This document shows, piece by piece, positions 3,743 through 53,335 of a stretch of DNA of 64,000 bases (position 1 is its first letter; each line of letters opens with the position of its first letter). The notes below the pieces were generated by a model. The model did no database searches. It saw only the letters and a list, made by a program, of their open reading frames with translations, and had not been told where the DNA came from. The DNA is from Ascoidea asiatica JCM 7603. Lineage: Eukaryota; Fungi; Ascomycota. The stretch spans positions 765,184 through 829,183 of the forward strand of contig BCKQ01000002.1 of assembly GCA_001600695.1 (NCBI GenBank). The letters are read 5' to 3'. The position numbers and the translations under genes were made by a program.

Positions 3743-6214
3743 TCAAAATGAAAGCATAGAATTAAATTCTATTTGATTAGAAACAATAAAATCAAAAATT
3801 CTTAAACTAAATTCAATTTCGGAACCTTCTCCAGTTTCCAAATCAAAATCTTGATTTTTATTTTCATTTTCATATGAATAAATATATTGATCTGGTAAAA
3901 GATTTTTCTGTCTTTCTTTTTCCTCCTCTTCTTCGATTAATTTAATATGCTTTTTGATTTGCTCTTGAAGTTGTATTGCTTGTTGATGAAGAATTGAATT
4001 TTCATTGGTTTTGAAATCTTCAATTTTCAATAGCTTTTTTTGGCTAATTGGAATCAATCTATGAGATGAAAATCTTTCCGTATTTTTTTTATTTTTATCA
4101 TTATTAAAATCCAGTACATCAATTGCATTATAAATTATTGAATTTTTTCTAGATAATAATTTTATAATTTCAATACATTGCTCAAATGGTTCTCTTTTTT
4201 CTGTAAAGCCAATTTTCTTCCATTTTTCTGTTGCAATATATCTAGATAATTTACCAACTACACTTTGAGGTATCAATCCAGTTTTATTTTTTTCAAAAAG
4301 TTTTTGAAAATCATTACAAAATTGAAGAATATCATTTTTAGTAGAAATTTTAATATTTCTATAATTATCATACTTTTTTAAAATTTCTTTAACTTCTGAA
4401 GTAAATTTAATCTCATTTCTATTTTCAATTTTACTTGAATCGATCATGTCACTATTTTCAGCAATCAAATTATAAATCTTGATTAATGACTCTCTTTTTT
4501 TATGGAAAGAATCAGATTCATCCTGCATGTTTATAATATTACTAAGCTCGGGATCAATAACACTGAAATTTTCACTAATAATTTTATTAGAATCAATATC
4601 ATTTCTACTGAAACTTATACTTGAAGGAAAATAATAATTAGAGTTATTTATGTCGTTGGATTCATTCAAAGAATTGGGTAAATCATTACCAGTTTTTGAA
4701 TTTTCTAGATTATCTTGATTTAGAAAAAAATTACTATCCATAGGAAAAATATGAGCACTTTGAAAACTTTTCCTAATATTAGATTTAGAAAAAGCATATT
4801 CTCTAGAAGCTTGATAAAGATAAGAAAAATCATTGTCAGAAATATATTTCAAACCTGTGTTTTTAATCCACTTTTGATAAACAGAAGACAAAGTATCTTT
4901 CAATATCGGAAAACAAAATTGATCCAACGGCTGAACTTTCGAACCATGAGCTGATGGAAGTATTAAAAGATCGATTTGATTAAAAAAACAAAATTCAAAA
5001 AAAGAATATGATAAATTTGTACCCGATCCATCGCATATAAATAATAGTCTTGGGTTTTTGTTACTAGAAGTACTTATTGAATGTTTCAAGGCTAAAGGAT
5101 AGATGTGTTCTTTTAAGAATTTAAGCATTATGTCAGTGGTTAAAAAAGCCTCTTTAGTTTTCTCAAAATTCCAATCCTTGAAGTTTTCATCATTTTGATT
5201 TTGATTATCATAATCTTTTATTAGGGGATCTAAAGGCTCTAAATTTGATTTTGAAACTATAAAGGGTGGAAAAATATATCCATCAGCTGAAATAGACTCA
5301 ATTGCAACTATTTGTTTATCATTTTTCAAGTTAATTTTTAGATTATTTCTAGAATATCTTTTTTTACAAAACTGATCGATGAAACCAATTACATCTATTG
5401 ATTGATCAAAATTTATAATCTGAGAAGGATGATAATTATATTTGGAGATATAATCATTCAATAACTTATAAAAAGGAGCAATAGTTTTAGTCGAAGCGGA
5501 AATATATCTAAAAGATTCTAAATTTGAAATTTTAAATTTTTTTACTAATTTTGAATTTCTTGCTAGAAATTTTCTTCTTAGCCAAGTTTCGGAAGCAAAA
5601 AAAGGTTGAGAAGTAGTAGTATTACTTAAAGTTTCTTTATCCGTTAATAGATTGTCATTTTTATAAAGTAAATAATTTGAATTTAAGTTGGGATTGATAT
5701 TACAACTAGGTACATCTTCTAGATTAAAGCTACCAAGAAAAGAATTATAATTTGAGATTCGTTCATTTACAATTTCATTAACCATATTCAATAAAATATC
5801 AGAAGTTACATAAAATTTAAAGCTTTCACACATTATTATACGTTCACACAATTTTTCTTCTTCATAATTTGATAATAATTGCCTACTCATATTTGATTGA
5901 AATCTAGGTACTCTTTTATCTTTCAATCTATTAGAAAAAGTTTGTCTTGATACATTCAAATTAAATTGTTTTTTAATTTTAGGGAAAGTATAATGAATAT
6001 CAGGATTAGATTTAATGAAAGAAATTGCATTCTGTAATTTATCTTCTTGTTCTTTATATTTTAGTAAATTTTGATTTATTTTGGATCTTGAAGCCAGCTT
6101 AGATTTTGAATTTAACGAAGATTCTGAGGGTGATGTTTTTGGAGATTTCGAAGACTTTGAATTAGCTTTGAAGTTTGGGTTATGTGGATTCAAGGGATGT
6201 ATTCCAATTCCCAT
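3743..6214 (-). CDS. Fot1/pogo-family DDE_1 transposase-like protein with psq and CENP-B-type HTH domains, possibly domesticated
   Basis: N-terminal LQNAI..VSRQTFSNRL and LLSNYEEEKL..SETWLRRKFLAR HTH motifs; NFD.., IESISADG..PPFIV, FICDG and QPLD motifs with 35 residues between the 2nd and 3rd Asp. Confidence 0.85.
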   Translation of the reverse strand: MGIGIHPLNPHNPNFKANSKSSKSPKTSPSESSLNSKSKLASRSKINQNLLKYKEQEDKLQNAISFIKSNPDIHYTFPKIKKQFNLNVSRQTFSNRLKDKRVPRFQSNMSRQLLSNYEEEKLCERIIMCESFKFYVTSDILLNMVNEIVNERISNYNSFLGSFNLEDVPSCNINPNLNSNYLLYKNDNLLTDKETLSNTTTSQPFFASETWLRRKFLARNSKLVKKFKISNLESFRYISASTKTIAPFYKLLNDYISKYNYHPSQIINFDQSIDVIGFIDQFCKKRYSRNNLKINLKNDKQIVAIESISADGYIFPPFIVSKSNLEPLDPLIKDYDNQNQNDENFKDWNFEKTKEAFLTTDIMLKFLKEHIYPLALKHSISTSSNKNPRLLFICDGSGTNLSYSFFEFCFFNQIDLLILPSAHGSKVQPLDQFCFPILKDTLSSVYQKWIKNTGLKYISDNDFSYLYQASREYAFSKSNIRKSFQSAHIFPMDSNFFLNQDNLENSKTGNDLPNSLNESNDINNSNYYFPSSISFSRNDIDSNKIISENFSVIDPELSNIINMQDESDSFHKKRESLIKIYNLIAENSDMIDSSKIENRNEIKFTSEVKEILKKYDNYRNIKISTKNDILQFCNDFQKLFEKNKTGLIPQSVVGKLSRYIATEKWKKIGFTEKREPFEQCIEIIKLLSRKNSIIYNAIDVLDFNNDKNKKNTERFSSHRLIPISQKKLLKIEDFKTNENSILHQQAIQLQEQIKKHIKLIEEEEEKERQKNLLPDQYIYSYENENKNQDFDLETGEGSEIEFSLRIFDFIVSNQIEFNSMLSF

Positions 6215-8886: not shown

Positions 8887-9589
8887 AGGTTATTTGTGAA
8901 AGTAATTTGCTCAAGTATTTATGTTCCTTATCACGAGTTTTAGAAATATTATATTTTCTTACATTTAGATAATCTTTTTAAAAATTTTTATAGATATAAA
9001 ATTTGTCATATCTCAATAGAAAATAAATAGAAAGTCATGAATTAAAACCCATTATTATAAAATGCAAAATGTAAACAAAAAAGTGCAGGACCTGTTTGAA
9101 AAATCAAAATGATTAAATTTTTCTTTCTAATTCTCGAGCTGTATATATTTTTCTATTTTAGTTTTTTTTTCCAATAAAAGGGCCCAAAAAGGAAAATACA
9201 ACTACAGATATAATCATTAGAGTTTAGCATGTTTTAGCAGAGATCTACCGATTTTAAGCAAAAATTTATCTTTACAAAAGAAGCAAATTTGAAAACCAAA
9301 AGTTTTGAAATTTTATTTGAAGAAAAGCACACCTATTAATGTCTATACACATGATTCAAGACAATTAACTTTGAGCTGAAAAAAAAAATAATTAGTATAT
9401 CATTAGTCAGGAGCATAAATATTGAAAGGAAATATTGGGAAAAGGATTCTTTCATGATAAACTTTTAAGGGGTTCAACTTTTCTTAATAATGTGATTTCA
9501 ATAACGAGTGAGTGTATTGTTTAATAAATAGCCTAATTTGAAATTAATTATTATCTGAACTTAATTTAACTTTATATTTGAATTTAACT

Positions 9590-10009
9590 TCAATTTTCAT
9601 GTTTATTTATCTCATTAGCCATTTCGCAAACTGCAGAATGAATAAGATAAATACTTATTGATATATCATTAAAAGAACCAACAAATAAGAAATATTTTGA
9701 TCTTGCAGTTGCAATACCATAATTTTTATTAAAATTTGGTAATAAATCTTGTGGTAAAGTACAAGCCATATGACCTCTACCAGCAATTAAAAAATCATAA
9801 TGACGATTTAAAACAGAAAGACCAGTATATTGAAAAGTATATGGATCATTTATTGCCATTAAAATATTTTGAACTTCATTACGAGATAATCTAATTGAGC
9901 AACCTTCGGCAACTGGACGACAAGTATGAATATCATAAATTGAAACAGTTCCACCAGGCTGACTATATTCAAGAGTATCGACTAAAAATTGTGCAAATGT
10001 TTGATCCAT
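9590..10009 (-). CDS. Divergent profilin-like protein
   Basis: 139 aa; aligns by eye along yeast profilin (SIYD; LSRNEVQNILMAINDP..FQYTGLSVLNRHYDFL; GIATARSKYFLFVG; AVCEMANEI). Confidence 0.7.
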   Translation of the reverse strand: MDQTFAQFLVDTLEYSQPGGTVSIYDIHTCRPVAEGCSIRLSRNEVQNILMAINDPYTFQYTGLSVLNRHYDFLIAGRGHMACTLPQDLLPNFNKNYGIATARSKYFLFVGSFNDISISIYLIHSAVCEMANEINKHEN

Positions 10010-10874
10010 TATTATTTTGATATTTTTTTCAGATAATATTTTTAAAAAAAAAATTGATGAAGCCTAGTAATATTATTAGTGAGTGATTTAATGAATGAAT
10101 TATTCAATGAATTATTGAAATGAAATATTGAAATAAGTGATGTTTTAGTCGAATAGTCCAATAGATATATATAAAAAAAAAAGATTTAGTTAATGTACAC
10201 AACTAAAAAAGGGACTTTTTTACGACTCTAAATGATTTGTCTATATTTGTTTGCTTTCTTATTTAGAATAAAAACTCCATTAAAAAATAAAATAGTCTTA
10301 TTATAGCTTGAATTTTATACCGAATGTGTTGTTTAACAAAGAAACTAATTGAAAGTTTGACTCTTATTTTCAAATAGAGAAATGTATATTGATGTTTAAA
10401 TTGATTGAAATTGAATTAAGTTGTTTTAAAGTGAAAAAAAAAATAAGATAAGAAATATTTGTAATTTCCCGATTTTCTAAATAGCACAAGGGTTATGGAA
10501 AAGATTAACTCAATTAAAGATATATGAAATACCAAAGGATTTAAGTTATTTATCCAAGCTTGATACAATTAAAAATATGGTTGAGTTGTGACAAAAAGGA
10601 ATTAAAAGACTTAAAATAAATATATATCTCTTCAATATTACGGTATTCAGTGTTGTAAAATCAGTGAATTTGAGTTCTAAACTTTTTGAAGACAATTTTT
10701 GAAAAAAAATTTGAAAAGTGAAAAGCTTTGGAACAAACGAATTAGGAAATAGTGCCAGAATGTTGGTCTTTAACTTTTAATTTTTTTAAATTTCTAATAT
10801 GTGCACCTGTATTTGTAGCTATATGACCTAGATAAAGTTTAGATTTCATTTGGCGTCCTGTTTTTAATTGATAA

Positions 10875-10880
10875 ACGCGT
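10875..10880. promoter_or_regulatory. MCB (MBF) element ACGCGT upstream of RFA3
   Basis: Exact ACGCGT ~170 bp upstream of a replication gene; RFA genes are MBF targets in yeasts. Confidence 0.7.
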
Positions 10881-11047
10881 TAAAAACAAAGGGAAATTAA
10901 ATATAAATTATTTTTGATAATATTCAAATATTCAGAAATAAAATATTATCAATTCATCAATATATCAAATAATTTCTAATATAATCTAATCAATCAATTG
11001 AAATATATAAATATAATCATTAAGTCGTTAAATTGTTTGTTTCAAAA

Positions 11048-11392
11048 ATGGCAGAAAGAACACCAAGAGTAAATCAACCATTATTACATGAATTCAAAAA
11101 TAAAGTAGTTAGAATTATTGGAAAATTAACTGAATTAAAATCATTAAATAAAGGTGTATTGTATAGTTCAGGTAATATAAATATAAATATACCACAAAAC
11201 TTAAAATTTGAAGTTGGACAATATTATGAAATAACTGGAAAAGTTTTAGAAGATTTAAGTATTAATACATTTGATAGAGTTTGTTTTTTTAATGAAGATG
11301 ATCCAAATGGTGAAAAAATTGAAATTAATGAAAATGCAGTTAATAGTTTAGTTAAATTTTGTCATAAATTTCCTGAAGTATTTTACGCATAA
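11048..11392 (+). CDS. RFA3: Replication protein A subunit 3 (RPA14)
   Basis: MAERTPRVN..VRIIGK, YEITGKV and C-terminal HKFPEVF; ATG at 11048 in AAA context. Confidence 0.88.
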   Translation: MAERTPRVNQPLLHEFKNKVVRIIGKLTELKSLNKGVLYSSGNININIPQNLKFEVGQYYEITGKVLEDLSINTFDRVCFFNEDDPNGEKIEINENAVNSLVKFCHKFPEVFYA

Positions 11393-12396: not shown

Positions 12397-14389
12397 ATTG
12401 AGATTTAATAAATTAATTGAATTGAATTGAATTGAATTGAGTGAATGGAAAAGTAATTGAGTTAATAGAATTCATATAACTTTATTGATATGATATATAA
12501 AGAAATGAATATATGAATATCTTTAAGAGAATTGAATTGAATTAAAATTTATTGACATAATAAATCACATAATAAATTACATATTAAATAAACTAAATAA
12601 AGAGAAATTGCTCAATTCCACAACCAATACAAAAGTCGCCATTCAGATCCTATCAGTGCAACCAAAACCAGCACCGGCACTATTACTAAAGTTACCGGAA
12701 ATATTACTAATAGTTACTAAATACATCTTCGGGTTGGGAGCACGGCTTATCTCCGCATGCCAGTTTTGTAACGCATCCATGTCTCTGGAAAAAAAGAAAA
12801 TAGGACAAAGGAACATGGAACATGGAAAAAAGGTCTTCCACGAAGTTCCTCTTTCTCTCAATCGTTACCACGCCAACAAATATATGAAGCGAGCCTTCCA
12901 TTTTCATCCATTGCAAATAATATACTACTGTATAAATATATCAATAATGATATTCATTTGAATGTCAATTGGAATATCTTTTTGAATATCAATTGATAGA
13001 ATATCACTGGAAAAAAATATCCTATTATGTTAATTGATAAAAAAATATTTACCGATAAAAATATGTATTAAAAGCTACAAAATTTATCTCAGTTTCAATT
13101 TTCTCCCGAATCGAGACATCAAAAAAGTCTCCAATCAGAACTTCTTTTAAACGAAGAGCATAAATATCAACCATAACTTATATGACTGTCATAGTCTTCA
13201 AAATTGAAATTTTAAACCCTCTAGTATCAAAACTATTCAAGTAATCAATCTGATTCAAGATTATTCAAATAGTTAGTGAAAATATTGAAAATTAGAAAAA
13301 AAAGCTAACAATTTTCAGAATTAATATTAACTAGAATTAACTTTTGAAATGCCCTTAAATTCAATAATTTTGAACTTTTTCTCTAACCTTTTTTCGCCGA
13401 ATCCTATCTTGTCCCTATAATTTTCAACCTTTTTCTACAATAGTTTTTCTACTGTACTGTACTTTTCTCTCTATGGTTTTTGGTCCTCTATTATTTTCCC
13501 ATAATGTTTCCCTGTAGTATCCAGTATATTTCAATTTGTTCAAGTTACTTTCAACAACAGCTTCAAACAAAAGACAGAGAAAATAATAGCTTCAACAACC
13601 TAACATTACTTGTAATATTATGAGCATTACTATTACTGCTAATAATGTTAAACAATTCTAATGGAAAAAAATTAGGATTGTTTAGGAAAATTAATCGGAC
13701 ATGAATTGGAACTGAAATGATAATACTTCAAGTAACGCAGATTTCAATCAAACCTGATATAAAATTAAAACAGATTCTAATCAAAATTTATTTTAAGTAG
13801 AAATGAAATCAATTTCAACCAAATGTGATAATTCTAAACATCAATCTGAACCTTGAGATTATTGAAGACAGAAAATAGATTCAGAGTAAGGAATGAAATA
13901 TGGAATAGGGAATATGGAATTTCATATGGGAAATCAGAAAAGGAAATTACAGAAATAAAAGATTTTCTATGGGTGCAAACTCAAGGAATGCCATGGGAAG
14001 GATTCACTTCACTCTGAGCGCTTAAAAACTAATTCACCTTAAACCTTTACTCAGAATCTCCCTTGTTTCTTCGCATACTTTTTTTTCCTTTGAGTTTCCC
14101 TTAATTTTATTTCCTTTATTTTCACGTTTAAAATTTCTCCTTTAAATTTGTTATTTCATTTCTCATATAATTTTCTACTTAACTTACCATTTAATTTATA
14201 ACTTATATAATCCTGTTTAAATTTCTTTTTTCTTTTTCTTTTTATTTAATCATAAATTCTTTATAAACTGATAGAATATTACCATTAAATTCAAGATGAA
14301 TTCTATTAGTATTAATAATCCCAATAATATTTGTTATACTTGTAATTATTTATAATAGATTAATTATCATCAATTCATTTAGATAATTA

Positions 14390-17300
14390 ATAAACCTTTT
14401 TTGAAGTTTATTTAAAAATACAATCAATTAACTTATTAATCATCTACTGGATGATCATCAATAAAAAGTCATAATGATATATCAAATTCAAGAACTAAAG
14501 AATTAATCTATTAGTCCATTATCCAATAATCAATCAATCAATTAAAGAGCATTATTATATTGATATAAGATAATATATTTATCAATTCCCTTAGCTTCCT
14601 CTTTAACAATTACTATAATAATTATAATATATTAACAATAATATTAATATCAGCAATCTAATCAATTAGATAAATTAAATAATTCAATTTAACTGGTGCT
14701 AACCATTTTTTGATGTATTTGAATATGTGTTATCAATAAAATTATATCCATCAATAAACTTAATCACTTAAACACCACTCAAAGACATTAAAAGACATAA
14801 AGAGGAAATTCATTGAGTTCATTAAGTTTATTAAAGTTGAATTCTTTAAAGAAGATTTAGATACAATCTTTTAAGCCTAATGCATTTAATTCTTTTTTTA
14901 AATTAATTATTTGATCAATAAGGTTTTCAAATTTCATAAGTTTTATCTCACTTTTCTTTCTTGCTTATTCTTTTCTTTTTTAATATTTTATCATCTAAAT
15001 CATTTAATCCATTAAAAAAAACAAATAAAAATAAGGTTTATAATTAATATCCAAAAAATAATAATTTTATAGATAAAAGTTTGAAAATGCAGTTGATTTG
15101 TTGATTTGTTTGTTGCTTTTTAATACTTGGGTTTTAACATTAGAAAACATAATTTTATTTCAATCTCATTTTGTTAATCTTTTTTTCAAAAAGTTGGCTG
15201 ATGATAATAATCAACAAATAGAACTCCTAATACTTTTTCCACCTAAATATCATCGTTTAAATAAGAAAAGTAATTATCAAATAAATCACTTAAGGAGAAA
15301 CCATAAAATGATAAATCTTACTGATATCACTTAAAATCACTCTTCTCCAAATCAGCAAACTTTACTAATTAATTCTTTAATCTCATTATACTTTACAATA
15401 ATAATCATTGAATTGAGGTGTAAAAGTATCATTCGTCTTACAGAAATATAATGAAAGATTAATCGGTGAAAAATTCAAAAAAAAAATAATCATAATTCAT
15501 AATTATTATTAATAGAAGTTAAAATTATAAGATAAACTCTTAAGGTTTTGCTGCATTATTGAAAATATAATCATGTTCACTTGTCTTAGTTCTTAAGTTG
15601 AATGATTGTATCAAAAACCTAGTCCTCACAAATTATTCATAAAAAACAATCTCATCTGATAGTTTTATCTTCAAAATGTAGTTGAGAGAATAATCAAACA
15701 ATTTACCGATAAATACAGCGATTCTAGAAAGAACTGCTGCTGATTTCTTCATTCACATATTATCACTTAAATCAGAAATATTATCATTAATTATTTCATG
15801 AAATAAACCTATATCAAAAGTGGTATTTCTCTGTTATTCAATTTCAATACTCCAATCTCAAATTTCAAATCTTCTTTAATAATTTTCCAATTCTCCATTT
15901 TTAATGAGTTTCAATAGCAATCATTGAATGAAAGACATAATTTTTTTTACAGAAGTGCAATTGAAAAAAATCTATCAATAGTGTTTTTGCATTTGGAAGA
16001 AAAACAGCTATTGCTTTCGTTATTTAACTACTATTGCTCAGATCAGGAGAATGATCATTAATGATTTTTTTGCTAAAATCCAAATTTTAAAGGTAGTAAA
16101 TTTTTTTTAATATTGGTTGTTTTTACCCTCTAATCTTAATTCTTTCATTAACTAATTCTCTGATTTTATCAAGGTTTTATATTGATCATTGAGTTAGGAA
16201 TATCATTTTTCCTATAAAAATACAATAAAGGAAGTAGCTACTAAAAAGAATCAGTATTTAAAATTTATATTCAAACAATAATTAATCATCAAAAATATCA
16301 TTAATTTCACTTATCCTATATTTCTTAGAATTGAATAATATTATTAAAAACTGTTTTTGAAATAAACTTTAAAAAAATATATTTTTTTTTTTGATTTCAT
16401 TTTAATAATCTTTATGAAAATAGTCAAACAATTAACTAGTAATGGTTGATAGTTGAAGGAAAGCTGCTGATACTTCTTAACTTCATGAAGTGTTAGCATT
16501 AATTTTTATAAAACATTCAAAGATGGATAGCCAGTTCAATCACATTCTAAAATTAACATACCAAAAAACCTGAAATTATAAGATATAGTCGTGAAGTTTC
16601 GCTTAATTTTTGGAGAAAAAAGTTTAAATTGTTCACTTATCTTACTTTTTAAAATTGAATGATTGTATCAAAAACCAGTTTTTTGCATAGATTTTTTAAA
16701 AATAATATCTTATTATATTCTCCTTCAGATAATCATTTTTTAAAATGTGGTTATTATTGACAATAGTAAAGAAATAAAATTGCTAGTATTTTTTCTTTTC
16801 GAACATTATCACTTTAATGAATATCTGGTAAATTCACTAAAGTGTTCAGAGATAAAGCACATTTCAATACAAGTGGATATTTTTGCTATCATTAATATAG
16901 TTTAAGTTCGCTCTTCTTCAATTCAGATTTTCCAAGTATACTAATTAGTTCTCTAATATCCCTTAGCTTTAACAATAATCATTTGATTAAAGTATTAGTT
17001 CTTTTAGAAAATTATAGTTGAAGATTTATGGATTAACTAAACAATTAGCATTTACAATTAATATTGAAAAGGAATGATATGATAAATATCTGTTAATTGT
17101 TTAAAAAGTAGTAACATTGTTTCCAGGTATTTCATTTCTTTGAATTGAATTACTGTATTAAAAATTTGTTTTTCAGAAACATTTCATGGAAAAGAATTTA
17201 GGTTTATAATCTTGTTTCAAAGTTGATAAAATAATAATTATCAATGTGTAATGGTTGTAATTTAAGAAGAAACTGCTGATACTTTCTTTATCTAGATATT

Positions 17301-17800
17301 ACTTCAGGAAAATAATTATTGAATCTGTTATTCATTGATATATTATTTTGAAACCAAAGAGTCTATTCAACTTAATTGTCTATTTGTTAATTTAATTTTT
17401 TAGTCTGCTAAGACTAATATTAATTTTTTCACAAAGATAATAATTTTTTTGAAGTATTAGTCTCTTATAGGAAGTTCTGAATAATATTAAATTATTTAAT
17501 ACTAAGGTAAAATGACTTCTTCACTAATTATATTATATTCAATTGGTGAAGCATTAGTTTAATTATACAATAGCTATTATTATTTGCCTTGGTATTCAAC
17601 GATTGAATTGGAAAAACCTGATTTTGAGTCAAAGGAGTTCAACTGAAGTTTTTTCAAAGCAAACTATTCATTTCTATACTTCTGTCTTAATTACTATATT
17701 TGGTTGCACACTTGTAAAATATTATAATTATTGTGTTATTTGTTGTATGAAAAAGTGTCAATTCTCTTTTAATATTATTGTCTAGTGTTCTTTGTTAGAA
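14390..17800 (+). pseudogene. Probable highly decayed F-box/LRR-like repeat-protein gene
   Basis: Frameshifted PF-EVYLKI F-box-like stretch near 14395; recurring degenerate unit ttgaatNNNtgtatYaaaaa (LNxCIKN) at 15598, 16331, 16655 and 17145, each followed ~130 nt later by a gctgctgat-like motif; many stops; boundaries approximate. Confidence 0.4.
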
Positions 17801-19251
17801 AAATTTGTTTTGTTTTGTTTTTCTAAAAAGTTTTATATGGAGATAGAATTTTTTTAAAAGTTTTTCTAGCAAAACAAAAATCCAAGTGTTATCTTCTAAT
17901 AAGAAAAGTTCGAATGCAGTATTTCATTAGTAACATGAAATCTTTTTTGAAGAAGTGGGTGGAGATAATGATGATATTAATTCATTTATATCCATTGTAA
18001 AGTATTTCATTTATATTATCAGCAAATTTAATCCTATCAGTGTACTTATCTTTGAAACTATTGTTTCTCAATTGTTTATGATAGATCTAATATTTTTTGT
18101 CTGAAGATGTCACATCCACATATTATGGCAATATTGCTCCAGCAATTAGTGTTATTTTAAAGTGGACTGTCATGAAGATAAAAGTCAGCAATACAATCAA
18201 TGAAACTATGTATTCTGGTTCTAGTTTCCAATAAGTCAAGAAAAATCAGATTAATAATAATTTTAGTTCACCGTTCTTAAAGCTACACTTATGGGTTTAC
18301 TATTACAATCTTTTTTGGACTCTTTCTTTTATTTATCAAGATAAATTGAAAAGTAGTTTCAAATCTATGGTTAAGACTTAGATCTCGTAATTATTAAAGT
18401 ACAAATTTATATGAATTGATCATACTTTTGCTTTTAAATCTATTTCACAGGCAGCTTACCCATTCCTTTAACCTATTTTTTTATGCTTTGTTTTTTCACT
18501 CGACTCCACGATAGTATGTTTTTCCTGTTCATCCTCTCTACGTGACGTTATGCTAACAGTGCATTATATCCTGGTTAACCTTTGAAATATTTTGGTAAGT
18601 TTTACTTTAGAGTTACGTTAATTTAAAAAAATCTGTTAAAGTTTCGAATATTTGAAAGTTATTTTTGAAAATTAAAAAATAACAATCAAATTTTTCAAAG
18701 AATTATTGGTAGTTTATTGCTTTTTCTAATAGTTTCTACATATATTCTATTTTATTTATTTTTTGGTTAAATACCAAAGTCTTTGACGGTACTGATTCTC
18801 AATTAAAGAAACTTCTGGATTCATAATTTATGAAATTCATTAAGAAGACTCTGAAATTTTGAAATTGGAATAGGGTGAATTTCAGCGAGTTCATTAATCT
18901 AAAATCAGTGGTTAAGCAAATGAATCAATTGAATAATTGAATATTCAAGTACTCTTCAAAATATCCAGAATTGATTGTATTTTTTTTGTCAAACAACTTT
19001 CCATGGCCTTACTTTGTTTCTATCTCAAAATTGGTTTCTATAAACTTCTCTGATTTAACCATTTATTTTGTCATATAAATTGTCAGGAATTTTCCCACAA
19101 TTTATTTTTATTTTGACAAAAAATATCTGTCTATTAGGCAAATAAGAATTCCATACAATAATAATCACCTATTAATACTAGTTTTCAATCATCAGCTTCA
19201 GCTTTTTAGAATATATTTTTTTTCTATATTAATCATCAAACAATTATCTCA

Positions 19252-26427: not shown

Positions 26428-27735
26428 TTAAGCACAAATAAAACCAGGAAATTCATTATCAACCTTAGGATTACTTTCAACTGTTAAAAGCATCTTACCA
26501 TGAATTGAGGTATGATGAGGTTCATTGAAAAGGCTGTAAAATATTCTAAATCTATCTCCCATGAACTTTTCTGCAATATGTTTAATGAATCTTTTGATGA
26601 AATCTATAAGTTTTTCTTTGGTATATTCATCAAAAAATCTGTCTTTTCTACAGTAAGAAACTTTGAATCCAACAGAATGTGACAAGGATAAAGCTTCAGC
26701 AAAATCGGAATCAGGTGATGCGCTTGACATATTATAAAGATTGGAAGATTCAGAATCATCATTTCTTTTAACAAGGGAAGCAAATTTTTGGAAATCTTTG
26801 TCTTTAACATTAATTTTATCATCTTCTTCAACTTTGTTTTGCTTTTTATTGAAATGCCCATAAATGGCACTGGTTTCAGGAGTATAAGCTCTGATAATAC
26901 ATTGACTTCCATTTTCAAATAATCCAACTTCTAATTCAATATTTCCCATGAATACAGAAAATTCCCATTTTTTAACTTTTGATTTACTATTTTGGATTTC
27001 CATTGATCTAGAATTTTTAGTGGAAACAATTTTATTACTTGAATCATAACCAATAATTTCAGATGATCTAAGTTTATAACCTTCTTCACCAAGTTTTATA
27101 AATCTATTATTTACAACTTCATTAGCAAAAGCAAAATCACTAAATTTAAATTTTTTCTCAGAACTAAAATCAGAAATATTATTATTTGAATCAAAATCTC
27201 TTGTAACAAGAGTAGTACCAACAGTTAAAACTAAAGCAGAAGTAATTAATACCCTACTAGCAGCAGTTAAAGCGGTTCCAATTGTATGAGCGCTACATTC
27301 AAATGCTTTTCCAGGTACAATTGTCCAACCAGCATGATTTGTTGAGTGAATAAAAGCTCCGCTACAAGCAGTTGTCATTCCTCCAAGATTGAAAGCAAGG
27401 CCAGCATAATTTCCCATAGCAGATCCCATTTCACCAGCAATTAAAGCAGTTCCTGCTGGTGTAAGTCCATTATTGGTTAAATTTTTTTCATTTTCTTTAG
27501 AATTTATAGAGTTAAAGTTATCAATATCGATTGAATTGCTTTCGGTACTTTTGGCTTTATTATTCACAATAGTAGTGGTGGTTTCAGAATTAGTTGATTG
27601 TTCATCAGTTGGAGTGGTGGTTCAGTTGAAAGTTGAATTTAAAGTTGGAGGTTGAGATGGTAATGGAACTGGGATTGATTGAACAGTTAAAAAAATTGTT
27701 AAATAAGCCCAAAAATTCTTAGTTGATAAATGCAT
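26428..27735 (-). pseudogene. K1-killer-toxin-like preprotoxin gene interrupted by one in-frame TGA at codon 38 (27622-27624)
   Basis: ATG 27735 begins a signal peptide (MHLSTKNFWAYLTIFLTVQSIP) in frame with the 379-aa track ORF; Gly/Ala-rich hydrophobic alpha-like region; Kex2 site VKR; C-terminal GFKVSYC..IAEKF..ES..NEFPGFIC resembles K1 beta GIKASYC..LAEKLF..EES..NDFEGC. Confidence 0.7.
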
Positions 27736-45958: not shown

Positions 45959-47047
45959 ATGAAATATTTTACATTTGGAATTGTGCTTTTATGTCTTTTA
46001 GAATGGGTTCATTCTTCTCCTGGTGATAAATTACAGGTTTTCAAAGATTGTGTTGAAGCTTGTAAAGATTTATCATGTGAGTTTCCTCCTGTTCGTGATC
46101 CAAATAATGAGTTTTCTCATTTAAGTTATTTTGATAAACCTCCATTACCATTACATTTAAAATTATTATTATGGGATTGTCCTTCAAGTTGTGATTTTCA
46201 ATGTCAAAAAATTATAAGTGAAATAAAAAGGTCAAGAAATGAAGAACAATATCAATTTCATGGAAAATGGTATTTTAGAAGAGTTTTAGGATGCCAAGAA
46301 TTCTTTAGTTCAATTTTTTCAATATTTAATTTTATAAGTCATTTTTGTGGTTATAAATTACTTCAAGATTATAGAAAGTCAAACAAAAAGTCCTTATCCC
46401 CTGAAATTACAAGATTAATCAATCGATATGTTTTTATTTCAATTGTTTCAATGCTTGCTTGGTTTTTTAGTACTATATTTCATATTAGAGATTTGAGTGT
46501 AACAGAAACTTTAGATTATTATTTTGCAGGTGGAACTGTTGTATCAATGTTTTATGCAATTACTGTAAGATGCTTCAAGTTATTCTTGAATGAAAATAAT
46601 AATAAATTAAAAAAGTTTACAACAATTTGTGCAATATTATATTCATGTCATATATTAAGATTAATTATAAATTGGGGATATAATTATAATATGAGATTTA
46701 ATATTATTATTGGACTTTTTCAATATTTTGAATCATTTTATCTTGGAATTACTACATTTAAAAAACATTGTGATGAAAATTATTTGAGAATAAATAAAGA
46801 TGGAAAAAAAAATAAGGTGAAGAAATATCAAATAACTAAAGAAAATTATTTTCATTTGATGCCAATTTTTTTAGTTATATGTGTGACGTGTGGAATGTCA
46901 TTTGAACTTTTTGATTTTTCTCCAATTTATGATCTTGTGGATGCTCATTCTATTTGGCATGCAACAACAGTTATACCTGGTTATGTTTGGTATAAGTGGA
47001 TGATATTTGATTGCAATAATATGAGAAGAAATAACAAAGAATCTTAA
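45959..47047 (+). CDS. PER1: GPI-anchor remodelling protein Per1/PGAP3
   Basis: SPGD, WDC...CDFQC, QFHGKW.F.R..G.QE, FHIRD, ELFDF and DAHSIWH motifs. Confidence 0.95.
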   Translation: MKYFTFGIVLLCLLEWVHSSPGDKLQVFKDCVEACKDLSCEFPPVRDPNNEFSHLSYFDKPPLPLHLKLLLWDCPSSCDFQCQKIISEIKRSRNEEQYQFHGKWYFRRVLGCQEFFSSIFSIFNFISHFCGYKLLQDYRKSNKKSLSPEITRLINRYVFISIVSMLAWFFSTIFHIRDLSVTETLDYYFAGGTVVSMFYAITVRCFKLFLNENNNKLKKFTTICAILYSCHILRLIINWGYNYNMRFNIIIGLFQYFESFYLGITTFKKHCDENYLRINKDGKKNKVKKYQITKENYFHLMPIFLVICVTCGMSFELFDFSPIYDLVDAHSIWHATTVIPGYVWYKWMIFDCNNMRRNNKES

Positions 47048-47567
47048 ATTTTTATCTCTTTTTATTTTTATTTTAAATTTTTATTCAAGTTTTATTCAAG
47101 TTTTATTCAATTTTTTGTTATATTTTTTTTTTTGGCTATCGTATTGTACAGTACTGTAGTGTAATATTCATATATTCGTAGCACTTTTTCGATATAAAAG
47201 TGAAACGGTGTTTAGGTGCTTAGTTATTTTTATCTCGAGTTAATTAAAATAGCTTAATTTAATACTTACTCGGATTAAAATTTCAAATAAATTTTCTTCA
47301 GATCGAAAGTGAAGCCATTTTTCAACTTATAGGAGATAAAGGAAAGAGGAGAAAGGAAATATTTATTAAGTTCAATATATTGAAATAATTAAGAATAATT
47401 ATAAAAGCCATTGAAACAAAATTAAATGATTTAAAGGAATAGATTCTAACTATTTAAAACACCAACAAAACCAGAATAGAAGCAAATAAGCAAAAAAAAG
47501 CAAACTTAAGTAACTAAAGGAATTAATGGAAATAGTATGAAATGAAATTATAACTTTTAAAAAAGAT

Positions 47568-48059
47568 TTAAAATCCATGGATTTTAATATTCTTTTTATC
47601 TAAACCAAGCTTTTCAGTTAAAAATTCGAGGACCTTAGCACGCTGGTCACCTTGTAATTGGATAACTTCTCCCAATTCTTTATCTTTAACGATATTACCA
47701 TTACAGGCAAAATCTTTTTTTAAAGCTTTTAAAATTCTTTTAAAGTCATAATCTTCTGATAAACCTTGAACAGTTGTTAATGTTTTACGACCATTACGTT
47801 GTTGAATACGAATATGAATGTAATTTCTTGGTTGAGTATCGTCGTCACCAGTATCGGCAAAAGGATCTTTATTTTAAAATATATTATTATTGTTAGTATT
47901 TTTATTTAATTTTAAAGAATTCTTGAAACATTTTAGAGTTTTTATTTTTTTATCATTACTAAAAGGACAACTAGCCAACTAGCCATCATTAATATAAAAA
48001 CCCAATAAAAGATAATATTAATACATACCAAAAGCTTTGAGGTTCTCAATAGAAGTCAT
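47568..48059 (-). CDS. SUI1: Translation initiation factor eIF1, 109 aa; exons 48059-48029 and 47866-47568
   Basis: Spliced translation MTSIENLKAFDPFADTG..YIHIRIQQRNGRKTLTTVQG..IQLQGDQR..IKIHGF; absent from the ORF track. Confidence 0.97.
47867..48028 (-). other. Spliceosomal intron of SUI1 (162 nt)
   Basis: 5' GTATGT at 48028, branch point TACTAAC at 47898-47892, 3' AAG ending at 47867; splicing restores the eIF1 frame. Confidence 0.93.
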
Positions 48060-48365
48060 TCAATGATATCAGAAAAAGGATAAATAATAGATTAGAGCCA
48101 AATCAATAAACAAATAGTTTTTGTTGTTTTTGTTGAATTTTTTAAAAATTAAAGATAATAGCAAAAAAAAAAATAGAAGTAAGAAAAACAAAAAGAAATC
48201 GAAGCAGGAAGAGGAATTTATATTATTTGTGACTCTCAGAATTGCTGTTGTCTTCCAATTAGTTTCTAGCATCGCTTCTCTCTTAGGGAGGCGCATGACT
48301 TGGCAGTTAAAGTTGCTTGGTCAGGTGCAGAGCTTCAAAAATAAAATACAATTGCTGCTCGGATA

Positions 48366-48373: not shown

Positions 48374-49585
48374 TTTTTTTAAAGTTGCTTTTTCAAGAAG
48401 ATCCACAGTTCTGGATTCTCAACTTTTTTCAAAATAATTCTATTTTTACTAGTCTGTGGGTTTCAGAGAACTCCGAATAACAAGCAGTAGAATAACAGGG
48501 TAACGTTAACTTTGATAGAGAAAAAAAAATAAGTGTATTTCTCGAAGACATCGGAAGTTAACCTGAAAATTATTGTGCGAAAACTACCAACAAAGGGAAA
48601 CAAGAAGAAAAAGAAATGAATAAGATTAAGAAAAGCAAATAAAACTTTTCATTAGGCATGGAGCAGATTGTATATAAAGAAATATAATCAAAAGTGATAA
48701 AAAAAGATAAATCAAAATCAGAATCAGAAAAATTGGTATGTAGTTTGGGATAAGTTGAATAATAATTGATGATGATTAATTCAATTCGCATTTTATACTT
48801 CGATTGTTTTTAAAAAATATGAAATTTTTCGACTTTAAAAATACCTTGCTACGTATAATAGATTATTATAAGTGATTATAAATAATGGCTATACTGTTAT
48901 ATGGATAAGATTCAGATGGGGGATAGTTATAAGGAGGAAATTTTGCCGAGGATATTTAAATAAAGGATTTTGATTTTAAACACTACTAATGAGGTTTTAA
49001 ATTATTGTGATATTGTAGCCGTCAGATATTGTTGCCGTTTGTAATTATCATAACTTTTTACAAAAGATCCGAATTAGTTCTTCTTCTTTCTATTTTTTTT
49101 AATTTCTGTATTGTGGGTGATTATAAGTTCAACATACATAGATGAATGGTCTGAAGTTAAAAAAAATATATGTTTTGTTACTTCGAGACCTTCTTGAAAA
49201 TAAAATTAGCTGGGTTTGATACTTTTAATTTCAATGACTTTTGATATTCACTTGGATAGAAATTACAGAAACTTGGATTTCACATTATTCTAAAATCTAA
49301 GATAAGAAACCTACAGTTTTACTTCAATCCTTAATGTTGAAAAATCAAGAACTATCTTTACAATCCAAAATATCAGAATATAAATTTATCACATACTTTC
49401 TTTTCTTTTTATTTTTTTTATTTTTTGAAACTTCAGTGTCTAGAAAGAACTTGAAAAACTGAAATTATTAATATCACTCGGGTTCATCTTATCTAGCACT
49501 ATTCTAACAACCCAATTAATGTGTTACGATAAATTTAACTCAAACTTCAGTCAACATTTATCAAATAAAATAACAAATAAATAAG

Positions 49586-50013
49586 AAAAATTAATAAAAA
49601 TGAGTTCAGTTGGGGTTTCTTATGATTTGACAAAGCCTACGAATCAAGTTATTAAGAGATTGTATGAACTATTAATGAATGGTAAAAAGTCTTTTCCAAG
49701 AGTTGATCTTGCCTTTGAATTTGTGATTGATCATTATACAAACGCTAGATATTTAGTAGTAATTGCAAATGACCCAGAATTTACTTTAAATAAATTCAAC
49801 TTAGTAACAATAAATGCAACAAAAAATAACCTAGATGGAAATGGTGATATTGCTGCAGTAAATAAAATGCCATTCTCAATTTTCAGAGTTTTACACCGAA
49901 CTGAACATTTTATTGTTTATGCATTTGATAGTGAGACTGAAAAACAGCTTCATTTATATATAATGATAGAAAAAGATGATGTTTATGAAAGATTTAATTT
50001 TCATGGAAAAGCA
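49586..50013 (+). repeat. Left arm of a perfect 428-bp inverted repeat
   Basis: Base-by-base identical to the reverse complement of 51593..52020. Confidence 0.95.
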
Positions 50014-50112
50014 ACTGTATCTGGCTCTGATCGTTGTTATACAATATCTTATAAACCTCCAGATGTGACTCAACAATTTTCACCACTTCAATATCTGTAC
50101 TCGTACTTATAA
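49600..50112 (+). CDS. Orphan protein, paralog A (170 aa)
   Basis: ATG in AAAA context; first 138 aa identical to 51485..52006. Confidence 0.8.
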   Translation: MSSVGVSYDLTKPTNQVIKRLYELLMNGKKSFPRVDLAFEFVIDHYTNARYLVVIANDPEFTLNKFNLVTINATKNNLDGNGDIAAVNKMPFSIFRVLHRTEHFIVYAFDSETEKQLHLYIMIEKDDVYERFNFHGKATVSGSDRCYTISYKPPDVTQQFSPLQYLYSYL

Positions 50113-51484
50113 GCAATTATGATAATTTACTCTGTTTATCATACTATCCTTAGGTGATACCTTTTTAATAGGATTTTACAAAAATGTAACTTATGAAATG
50201 CTGATGGATTTTATTCAACGTTAGCTATCAATCGGCTTCTACTCTCATTATACACTTTTTTTTGGTTCCAATTTTAGTTTCTGGCTTCTTTTTATTTATT
50301 TTAAGTAATACATAGGATTTTTTTTTTTGATTAGTATTGCAAAGGCAATATGCTCAGATTTTTAGGAAAAGTCTCATTTTCTTTTTCAATTTTGTTTATT
50401 TCTTTTTTATTTCCTTTTTTTTTTTTGTTTGCAAAAAGGTAAGAATATTTCAATCGTCTTTTGCTTTAGATATCTTCAAATAAATTTATCCTTTCCTGTG
50501 TAATAAGGTTGATACCGACTAACCGTAATGGCCACTATTGTAAGTTAAATTCATATTTAATCAATAATTTTAGAAATTATAAAACTTTTAAAAACAATTC
50601 TTCTTAAAATAATTCGGTTAACTTCATCCAGGATTGTGTCTTTTTGACGTTCACTGAAAAAAATAAACCATGCCGAAGGAGCTTTTGATACAATTCTCCT
50701 TACAGTAGATGTCTTCAAGAACCACTATTTTGGTACTCTACTAAGTGCTGACTTTAGACTGAAGAAGGTAACTTTATATCCAACTTTGTCTCGCTATTCT
50801 ATTTTTTTTTGCTTTTTTTGAATAACTCTGCAATTTAATTCTGGTTTCTTATTATTAAATTATGCAATGACATTTGATTGGCTTTTCTACAGTGCTATTT
50901 TTGTAAGTGGTCTGTCTAACTAGTAAAACTTTTAGAGCCTGTCAAAATATTCAAATCCTTTTTATAGAGGACCCTTTAGTAGGAATTTTCCAGGGAAAAC
51001 CAAATCATTATTTCTCTTTAAAAGTTGATTACATTTTTATTACAGAGGTCGATTTTTATAAAATAAAACTAAATTGCTAGTGGACTACATAGATAAAAGC
51101 ATTATTGCAGTAAATCCCTTTTTATTGAGTATAAGTCTATCCCAAGCTTCCGAAAAATTTTAATTGTCATATAAAAAATCAAAAAAAAAGAGTATTGAAT
51201 ACAATTGTAAAAAAAAAAAAGAGAATTTTCCCGAAAATGCTAGAATATTGCTAATAAAAAGAAAAACTGTTATTAGCTATTCAAAAAAGTAAAAAAAAGC
51301 TATAAACCAAAATTGAAATTTGAAAGAAAAGAGTACACTCTTGAGGAATAATTGAGTATCAACCAGTGAGAAATAAGATGTACCAGAATTTTATTAAACA
51401 AAAATTTTTTGATGAAAATTATTTTCATCATAAATTTTATAAAAAGGGAGAGTCTGAGAATAGTTAACAAATAAAATACATATA

Positions 51485-52006
51485 TTATAAATGTCTCGAA
51501 ATATAAGCACGTATATTAAAACGACGGTGTTTCTTGGTCACTTTTGAAGGTTTATAATTTATGATATAACAACCATTAGAGCCAGATATAGCTGCTTTTC
51601 CATGAAAATTAAATCTTTCATAAACATCATCTTTTTCTATCATTATATATAAATGAAGCTGTTTTTCAGTCTCACTATCAAATGCATAAACAATAAAATG
51701 TTCAGTTCGGTGTAAAACTCTGAAAATTGAGAATGGCATTTTATTTACTGCAGCAATATCACCATTTCCATCTAGGTTATTTTTTGTTGCATTTATTGTT
51801 ACTAAGTTGAATTTATTTAAAGTAAATTCTGGGTCATTTGCAATTACTACTAAATATCTAGCGTTTGTATAATGATCAATCACAAATTCAAAGGCAAGAT
51901 CAACTCTTGGAAAAGACTTTTTACCATTCATTAATAGTTCATACAATCTCTTAATAACTTGATTCGTAGGCTTTGTCAAATCATAAGAAACCCCAACTGA
52001 ACTCAT
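51485..52006 (-). CDS. Orphan protein, paralog B (173 aa)
   Basis: First 138 aa identical to paralog A; divergent, basic C-terminus. Confidence 0.8.
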   Translation of the reverse strand: MSSVGVSYDLTKPTNQVIKRLYELLMNGKKSFPRVDLAFEFVIDHYTNARYLVVIANDPEFTLNKFNLVTINATKNNLDGNGDIAAVNKMPFSIFRVLHRTEHFIVYAFDSETEKQLHLYIMIEKDDVYERFNFHGKAAISGSNGCYIINYKPSKVTKKHRRFNIRAYISRHL

Positions 52007-52020
52007 TTTTATTAATTTTT
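51593..52020 (-). repeat. Right arm of a perfect 428-bp inverted repeat
   Basis: Base-by-base identical to the reverse complement of 49586..50013. Confidence 0.95.
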
Positions 52021-53216
52021 ATTAGTTTCTATTAGTTTTTATTAGTTTTTTGTTGTTAGGTTTGTTGAGTGTTGATTGAAGTTTGAGTAAAATTAACTGT
52101 ATTTACTTAAAGTTATAGGAGTAATATTAGATAAGTTGATTCCTAGTGAGTTTATATTTCTTTTTTGTTTGTTTTTATGATGATTTAAATAATAGTGAAG
52201 CTAAAAACAAAAGGGAGAAATGTAGTAAATATATATGTTCGAAGTTGAAATAATTTTAACAATAAACATTAAAGTAAAACCAGAGATTATATATTTTTGA
52301 TTTTAGAATAGTAAGAAAAATCCAAGTTTCTGTAATTTGTAGATAAATATATATTAAAATACATCAAAAGCAAAATTACTCAAACCAACTGAGTGAATAT
52401 TTTTATATTACTAGGAATTGCACCTCTCAAAGTAAGCTAAAACTTGAAATAGTTTTATTTTAGAAGACATTTCACTATTGCATATTGTATTTACAATGAC
52501 CCATAGTACAGTAAGCTTAAGAAACCCAGAGAAATGAAAACAAAATATTTTCCTAAATCATGCTATCATAAAAGGCTTTAAGACACAGAAGTTAGGATGA
52601 GCTCAAATTATACTTTAGGTCTCTTAATGACTAAATAAGTAGGATTATCCAATTAAAGAAAAAAAAAAAAGCTTTTAAATAACCCATAATTTCACAAATA
52701 TTATAGTATTACTCAGCGAATATTATACTATCCAATATCCAAAAAAAAGAATAACCAAACAAAGAATAAAAAATGTAAATTATCCTTGAATACATTGGAC
52801 AGATTTTTGTATTTCCTTTTTATTATTCGAAGCTCAATGCTAAGTCTCACATTTGCTTCAGATTCTAAAAGTTTTACTGGTATATCAAATATCCTGGTGC
52901 AAAATGGATATATTTTTCGGTAAGAGACAGAACCCTTGATGTTGGGTGAACCGCTATACTGCCAGAAACACTAAATACCACCTCAAAATCTTCTTTTTTA
53001 CATAGTAAACGTTGTTTCTAAAACAAGAACAAAAACCTCAAAATAATCCAAATAATTTTTTTAAACACTTTAAACCCTTACAAACGGGACTATCTTTATA
53101 TGTCATATGATTTAGCTTATTACTATGGTCCCGGACCACGCATTTTTGGCAGTATATAGTGGGGCCCGAAATTGGCCTCAAAAGAACCGTTATCGAAATC
53201 CGCCAAAAAACAAATC

Positions 53217-53335
53217 CGCAAATTTCCTTTAGACGCAAAAGCTCTGCACGCATATTTGCTACGCAAAAACAACGCTATTTGCGGATCTCTTTTTTTGTTT
53301 GCTTTACTCGATGAATAAACAAAAGAAAGTAAACA
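53217..53335. promoter_or_regulatory. Cluster of four CGCAAAW (MSE-like, Ndt80/Sum1) motifs plus a forkhead site GTAAACA upstream of SLI15
   Basis: CGCAAAT 53217, CGCAAAA 53234 and 53262, ATTTGCG 53277, GTAAACA 53329. Confidence 0.5.

Follow-up and report, generated by a model that had tools for sequence, protein, structure and literature searches.

Arm-to-arm gene conversion as the probable source of a perfect 428-bp inverted repeat in two convergent orphan genes of Ascoidea asiatica

The closest described counterpart of the locus reported here is the FF region of Saccharomyces chromosome XIV, an inverted repeat of orphan genes outside the mating-type (MAT) locus that contains YNL018C/YNL034W (Centroid) and YNL019C/YNL033W (PMC9731477). 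In the FF region, ~4% of the conversions were resolved as crossovers, no flip was found in ~53,800 mitoses and 950 meioses, and the authors call the recurrent inversion a by-product of gene conversion (PMC9731477). An inverted repeat also serves the FF1 mating-type flip/flop of Ogataea polymorpha, Pachysolen tannophilus and Ascoidea rubescens (PMC6692504). Here, we analysed a stretch of 64,000 nucleotides from Ascoidea asiatica JCM 7603 (contig BCKQ01000002.1, positions 765,184 to 829,183; this whole stretch is called the window, and positions refer to it), which carries two convergent orphan genes, copy A and copy B, joined by a 428-bp inverted repeat. An earlier interpretation made from the letters of the window (the sequence-only reading) had proposed a shufflon-like or phase switch for this pair and had known no precedent in an orphan family outside MAT; the FF region is such a precedent, and there the inversion is read as a conversion by-product.

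Exact extension showed that the two arms are 100% identical over 428 bp, all synonymous sites included, in agreement with the earlier description of perfect inverted copies at 49586-50013 and 51593-52020 around a spacer of 1579 bp. If the background identity were 80%, 428 identical bases would be expected by chance with a probability of ~1e-41. The similarity of the arms greatly exceeds what the age of the duplication would lead one to expect, since the core is 100% identical and the homologous flanks are 68-71% identical. These results suggest that an old inverted duplication has probably been homogenised by gene conversion, with inversion of the spacer possible merely as a by-product. The pair are the sole two copies of the gene, and no third copy was found in the genome searched (20.3 Mb, 71 contigs). 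The spacer contains no open reading frame (ORF) longer than 56 amino acids besides the pair, no tRNA and no Rfam match. The main features are as follows, the two copies being identical over residues 1-138.

49586-50013, plus strand: left arm, exact 428-bp inverted repeat consisting of 14 nt of leader and codons 1-138 (exact extension, read-set contigs)
51593-52020, minus strand: right arm, exact 428-bp inverted repeat (exact extension, read-set contigs)
50014-51592, no strand: spacer of 1579 bp, made up of the tails and 3' regions of the two copies and a unique centre
49600-50112, plus strand: copy A, orphan ORF of 170 amino acids, isoelectric point (pI) 6.5, with the last 13 residues read in a frame shifted from that of copy B
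51485-52006, minus strand: copy B, orphan ORF of 173 amino acids, pI 9.5, with a basic tail and probably the ancestral frame and stop

The identity of the arms was also found in three public read sets from two studies, which possibly represent one strain and possibly the source of the assembly itself. In each read set, a single contig of 428 nt corresponded exactly to 49586-50013 with 0 differences, and its depth was 95, 142 and 105, compared to ~45-64 for the unique flanks (~2-fold). The contigs of the unique flanks and of the spacer stopped at the identical repeat edges and matched the window without differences. This contig pattern is the one expected of two identical copies. The alternative is that a collapse during assembly or polishing made merely similar arms appear identical, which the sequence-only reading had expected to show as single-nucleotide polymorphisms (SNPs) between the arms. 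The data are short-read only and read-derived contigs lose minor variants, so that the 0 differences leave room for an isolated SNP or two by which the arms differ; SNPs in such number would not alter the picture. Since one 428-nt contig with ~2-fold depth and the same edges was obtained in all three read sets, a collapse is exceedingly unlikely. None of the contigs crosses the 428-bp repeat, hence the orientation of the spacer is not readable from them.

Outside the core, the homology between the two copies continues but is diverged. Upstream, 49213-49584 aligned with ~52042-52386 at 256 of 379 positions (local score 127, compared to a mean of 26 and a maximum of 43 for shuffled sequences), and the word that had been noticed near 49261 and, inverted, at ~52320 turned out to be an exact 21-mer (49260-49280 and 52318-52338). 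At the 3' side, 127 of 180 positions were identical between 50251-50420 and 51173-51335 (score 86; shuffled mean 33, maximum 49), while no arm-to-arm homology was detected in the spacer centre. Since both flanks score far above the shuffles and the spacer centre has no such homology, the duplication is old and the core is young. The diverged features are as follows.

49213-49585, plus strand: upstream (promoter) sequence of copy A, which shares ~68% identity with its counterpart in copy B and has exact blocks at -340 (21 bp), -314 (12 bp) and -62 (12 bp)
52021-52386, minus strand: upstream (promoter) sequence of copy B, in which these blocks recur in colinear order at -332, -304 and -82
50251-50420, plus strand: sequence 3' of copy A, which shares 71% identity with the corresponding flank of copy B
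51173-51335, minus strand: sequence 3' of copy B that is homologous to 50251-50420
50014-50070, plus strand: codons 139-157 of copy A, diverged from 51536-51592 of copy B but read in the same frame
50071-50122, plus strand: tail region of copy A past the frameshift, which aligns with copy B at an offset of one base

The 5' edge of the identical tract abuts an indel block, in which an A-rich unit of ~11 nt forms a short tandem expansion in the promoter of copy B (~52021-52053). The 3' edge falls within the ORF at a position free of indels, and it is graded, the differences rising from 4 in codons 139-147 to 8 in codons 148-157. Thus, the earlier view of an old duplication with a homogenised core was borne out (100% compared to ~70% identity), but a sharp edge at the 3' side was not. 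Edges of this kind, one at an indel and tandem block and one graded, are what one expects where pairing is halted by indels and substitutions (PMC3924837). Past codon 157, the best DNA alignment of the two copies has a one-base offset, in which 29 of 51 nt are identical (shuffle p = 3e-5, or ~1e-3 when the ~25 offsets tried are allowed for). When read in the shifted frame, the DNA of copy A is open as far as a stop at 50120-50122 that aligns exactly with the stop of copy B, and the product shares an F-N-I stretch and the final Leu with copy B. In contrast, the DNA of copy B read in the frame of copy A meets a stop after six codons and not at the stop of copy A. Since copy A is open to the stop of copy B and copy B is closed in the frame of copy A, we infer that the ancestral frame most likely survives in copy B and that the last 13 residues of copy A arose from a one-base frameshift. 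The last codons and the 3' regions had been described as related but diverged; homology does extend through the 3' flank, but over the last 13-16 codons the two copies use different reading frames. The sole CTG codon of the pair (50095-50097, codon 166) lies inside the tail of copy A that would derive from the frameshift, and A. asiatica reads CUG randomly as Ser or Leu (PMC6041473).

The two tails differ in charge, with a pI of 5.6 in copy A and 10.7 in copy B; tail B has eight lysine or arginine residues and no aspartate or glutamate, and tail A has two of the former and two of the latter. This difference is real and would largely be a consequence of the frameshift. It could also be explained if the same conversion took place and selection kept the C-termini different, one basic and one neutral, for example for localisation or for partners, as in an opsin-type model without any switching. 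This explanation fits the charge of the tails, the position of the 3' edge within the ORF at a point without an indel, and the differences in codons 139-157, just beyond the edge, where 10 are nonsynonymous and 2 synonymous. However, these fall on 43 nonsynonymous and 14 synonymous sites (0.23 and 0.14 differences per site, respectively), and 10:2 is close to the neutral ratio of 43:14. In addition, the identity per 100 aligned columns was 69 over the tail and 55-73 in the non-coding flanks; the tail is thus not a divergence peak, which is the signature of selected differences between converting paralogues (PMC3924837). With the end of tail A appearing to be a frameshift product as well, we consider selection for different tails unlikely.

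Gene conversion between old inverted duplicates would account for these observations as follows. A species-restricted gene for a small soluble protein would have been duplicated long ago in inverted and convergent orientation, promoter and terminator included, and the copies, which lie 1.6 kb apart, may repair off each other by non-allelic homologous recombination. The indel-free coding part would have remained similar enough to go on converting, and the flanks and the weakly constrained C-terminal tail would have gathered indels and escaped conversion. The latest tract, or a set of overlapping tracts, would start at the indel block that immediately precedes the ATG and end with codon 138, either in the course of recurrent conversion or in one recent event. 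Later, copy A would have taken a one-base frameshift near codon 157 that gave it a different set of last 13 residues. A minority of the conversions may be resolved as crossovers, which would invert the spacer and swap the tails between two homologous promoters; such a tail swap is probably a rare, near-neutral by-product. Three points weigh against gene conversion as the cause. Among 264 kb scanned, the 428-bp pair is the sole exact inverted repeat of at least 50 bp, which lends no support to such pairs being common. No copy was detected in a second strain or a sister species from which concerted evolution could be read on a tree. Finally, amino-acid changes account for 10 of the 12 differences in codons 139-157, and such changes and the tail charge would also be expected from selection for different tails.

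The locus lies mid-contig, ~815 kb into a contig of 2.5 Mb. Two housekeeping genes flank it, SUI1 to the left and SLI15 to the right, and the promoter of each copy lies in the intergenic region that separates the copy from the nearer of them. No ORF longer than 83 amino acids other than the pair was found between SUI1 and SLI15, and therefore no recombinase is adjacent. The closest relative of PER1 and the closest named relative of SVP26 are both from Ascoidea rubescens, and neither a homologue of the pair nor a comparable repeat was found in the SUI1-PER1 and SLI15-SVP26 neighbourhoods of that species. PER1 and SUI1 are convergent in A. asiatica (45959-48070), whereas they are in tandem in A. 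rubescens (positions 8983-11134 of the stretch compared), and SUI1 and SLI15 also have different upstream genes in the two species. Since the gene order differs on both sides, the pair appears to lie at a local synteny break and to be restricted to the A. asiatica lineage. The idea that copy A is an insertion, hinted at by a contig joint of 48706 to 50561, was rejected because the spacer matched nothing outside except an AT-rich low-complexity stretch within an unrelated gene of contig C4, and that stretch also weakly matches 48677-48707.

When the spacer was inverted in silico, the left locus encoded B and the right locus encoded A, and both remained intact; this agrees with the earlier statement that a crossover keeps both ORFs whole and swaps the protein made from each promoter. 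Such a geometry permits a programmed flip/flop, in which regulated recombination in the 428-bp core would swap the tails between differently regulated promoters, and the genus has evolved switching by inversion at MAT in A. rubescens (PMC6692504). However, the two proteins would be encoded whichever way the spacer lies, a flip would leave each promoter in place, the two promoters are homologous to each other, and the read-set contigs, which end at the repeat edges, give no evidence on orientation. Neither the spacer nor the interval between SUI1 and SLI15 contains a recombinase ORF, and within the 264 kb no telomere or gene desert was seen in the sequence beside either arm. A. asiatica is a heterothallic diploid, and its MAT locus is a separate one between ADR1 and MHP1 (PMC6692504). 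From its sequence, the pair appears to have no silent-versus-active asymmetry, which is what makes the MAT flip/flop a switch. A programmed flip/flop is very improbable on these grounds, and the proposal of a shufflon-like or phase switch is not sustained by homologous promoters beside SUI1 and SLI15 and by tails that differ largely through a frameshift and show no divergence peak. We also doubt strongly that inversion through the coding repeat is frequent or regulated, such that cells would differ in the promoter that drives the basic- or the neutral-tailed form. If true, this would be a eukaryotic, recombinase-free swap of C-termini outside mating type, and the locus would be surprising only if a condition-dependent flip went together with different functions of the tails.

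An open frame of 170 codons is expected by chance with a probability of ~2e-7 at the local base composition, and copies A and B are therefore probably real genes. No homologue of the protein was found in Pfam, PHROGs, PDB sequences, a word-index search and exact look-ups, by a full phmmer search against 1.84 billion cluster representatives, or among viral and metagenome contigs. By hydropathy, no membrane segment or signal peptide was detected (19-residue maximum 0.89). Two AlphaFold2 models were unusable, with a mean predicted local distance difference test (pLDDT) score of 35 and 32, and the structural search gave no meaningful match, with a best Z of 5.5 and none of at least 8. Both models hint at one N-terminal helix followed by beta strands, and no fold is claimed given the low pLDDT and Z. 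ESM Atlas features returned nothing for copy A. A similarity of copy B to phage hypothetical clusters, one with DUF6934 (ESM Atlas 0.90-0.92), was rejected, as the recognition was low (1895) and Pfam support was absent. We tentatively regard the product as small, soluble and rich in beta strands, with a C-terminus under loose constraint. CRCAAAW, the core of the middle sporulation element, was absent from both proximal promoters, and a link to sporulation was dropped.

A species-restricted orphan at a synteny break, with a common N-terminal domain and tails of different charge, could also be a selfish module of the poison/antidote or toxin/immunity type, for which the wtf drivers offer an analogy. 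In such a module, a shared interaction domain would be kept identical by selection and the tails would set different fates. However, neither a signal peptide nor a membrane segment was detected in the protein, the genome holds just two copies, neither proximal promoter has the CRCAAAW motif, and no link in sequence or fold to any such family was found. A selfish module is thus highly unlikely.

Several other features of the window and its surroundings were noted. A copy of a non-autonomous DNA element of ~225 bp (a miniature inverted-repeat transposable element, MITE) with imperfect terminal inverted repeats lies at 52944-53167. Its distance to the right arm is ~930 bp, and it has no relation to the edges of the repeat. 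The genome has at least nine near-full copies of this MITE with 89-96% identity, and several of the other copies have 9-bp target-site duplications, which suggests a Mutator-like family; the copy at 52944-53167 has no clear duplication. Beside it, at 53217-53283, four CGCAAAW matches occur in 70 bp upstream of SLI15, a pattern that is not enriched window-wide. An old inverted paralogue pair was found on contig 2 in the 264 kb scanned (588305-591717 and 621124-624506; 3.4 kb, 67% identity, 29 kb apart), and it contains no identical tract of at least 50 bp. Further away in the window, ~7 kb at 12400-19250 have a G+C content of 22% and no convincing ORF, between an MCR1-like gene and an orphan ORF of 177 amino acids, and an ORF of 379 amino acids lies at 26428-27567. 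On the minus strand, an ORF of 823 amino acids (3743-6214) resembles by eye, and may be, a derivative of a pogo/Fot1-type (CENP-B-like) DDE transposase, and an ORF of 139 amino acids (9590-10009), without a match in PHROGs, may be profilin-like by eye.

Bacterial shufflons and DNA invertases, such as R64 PilV-Rci and Mu Gin, act on short sites with a dedicated site-specific recombinase and have one promoter and a constant region. The A. asiatica pair is similar in that inversion would join a constant N-terminus to alternative C-termini. It differs in having two complete genes and two promoters and no recombinase; no recombinase with short crossover sites was found nearby, the repeat being 428 bp of coding sequence, and in place of one promoter with silent alternative C-termini there are two full ORFs with homologous promoters. 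The FF1 flip/flop is alike in that homologous recombination can invert DNA through a single inverted repeat, within which the 5' end of a gene may lie (PMC6692504). There, however, the arm is ~2 kb compared to 428 bp here, and MAT genes and induced inversion are involved. In A. asiatica, no MATa or MATalpha gene was found in the segment or at its ends, where the spacer has no further ORF above the 56-residue limit and the two ORFs have no Pfam match, and neither arm appears to lie beside a silencing site such as a telomere or centromere, judging from the mid-contig position and the SUI1 and SLI15 flanks.

Conversion between local paralogues, as reviewed by Fawcett and Innan, likewise leaves identical tracts of a few hundred bases in older duplicates, ended by indels or substitutions; the opsin case shows a divergence peak, whereas the A. 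asiatica pair does not (PMC3924837). The inverted repeats of convergent or divergent paralogues in Caenorhabditis are also inverted pairs kept similar from arm to arm (PMC1803023), but the flanks of the A. asiatica pair have decayed and the pair is known from one species. The closest likeness is to the FF region, where lineage-restricted orphans lie in arms homogenised by conversion, the enclosed DNA is invertible as a by-product, and short reads collapse the repeat to one contig of 2-fold coverage (PMC9731477). The FF region differs in its arms of 4.2 kb with whole genes and promoters and in its inverted region of 24 kb and 15 genes; both of its orientations have been shown, and its genes are sporulation-specific and centromere-linked, whereas the A. 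asiatica pair is known from sequence alone. With an arm of 428 bp, a spacer of 1.6 kb and a tract that ends inside the ORF, a flip of the A. asiatica pair would exchange C-termini. The Centroid family is confined to Saccharomycetaceae (PMC9731477), and the A. asiatica genes do not appear to belong to it, with no match in the 1.84 billion representatives and no CRCAAAW in the proximal promoters. Taken together, the comparison suggests that the pair resembles a miniature FF region and most likely reflects an ordinary mechanism, which would make it a compact example of arm-to-arm gene conversion with a tract ending inside an ORF, and would add one more orphan protein.

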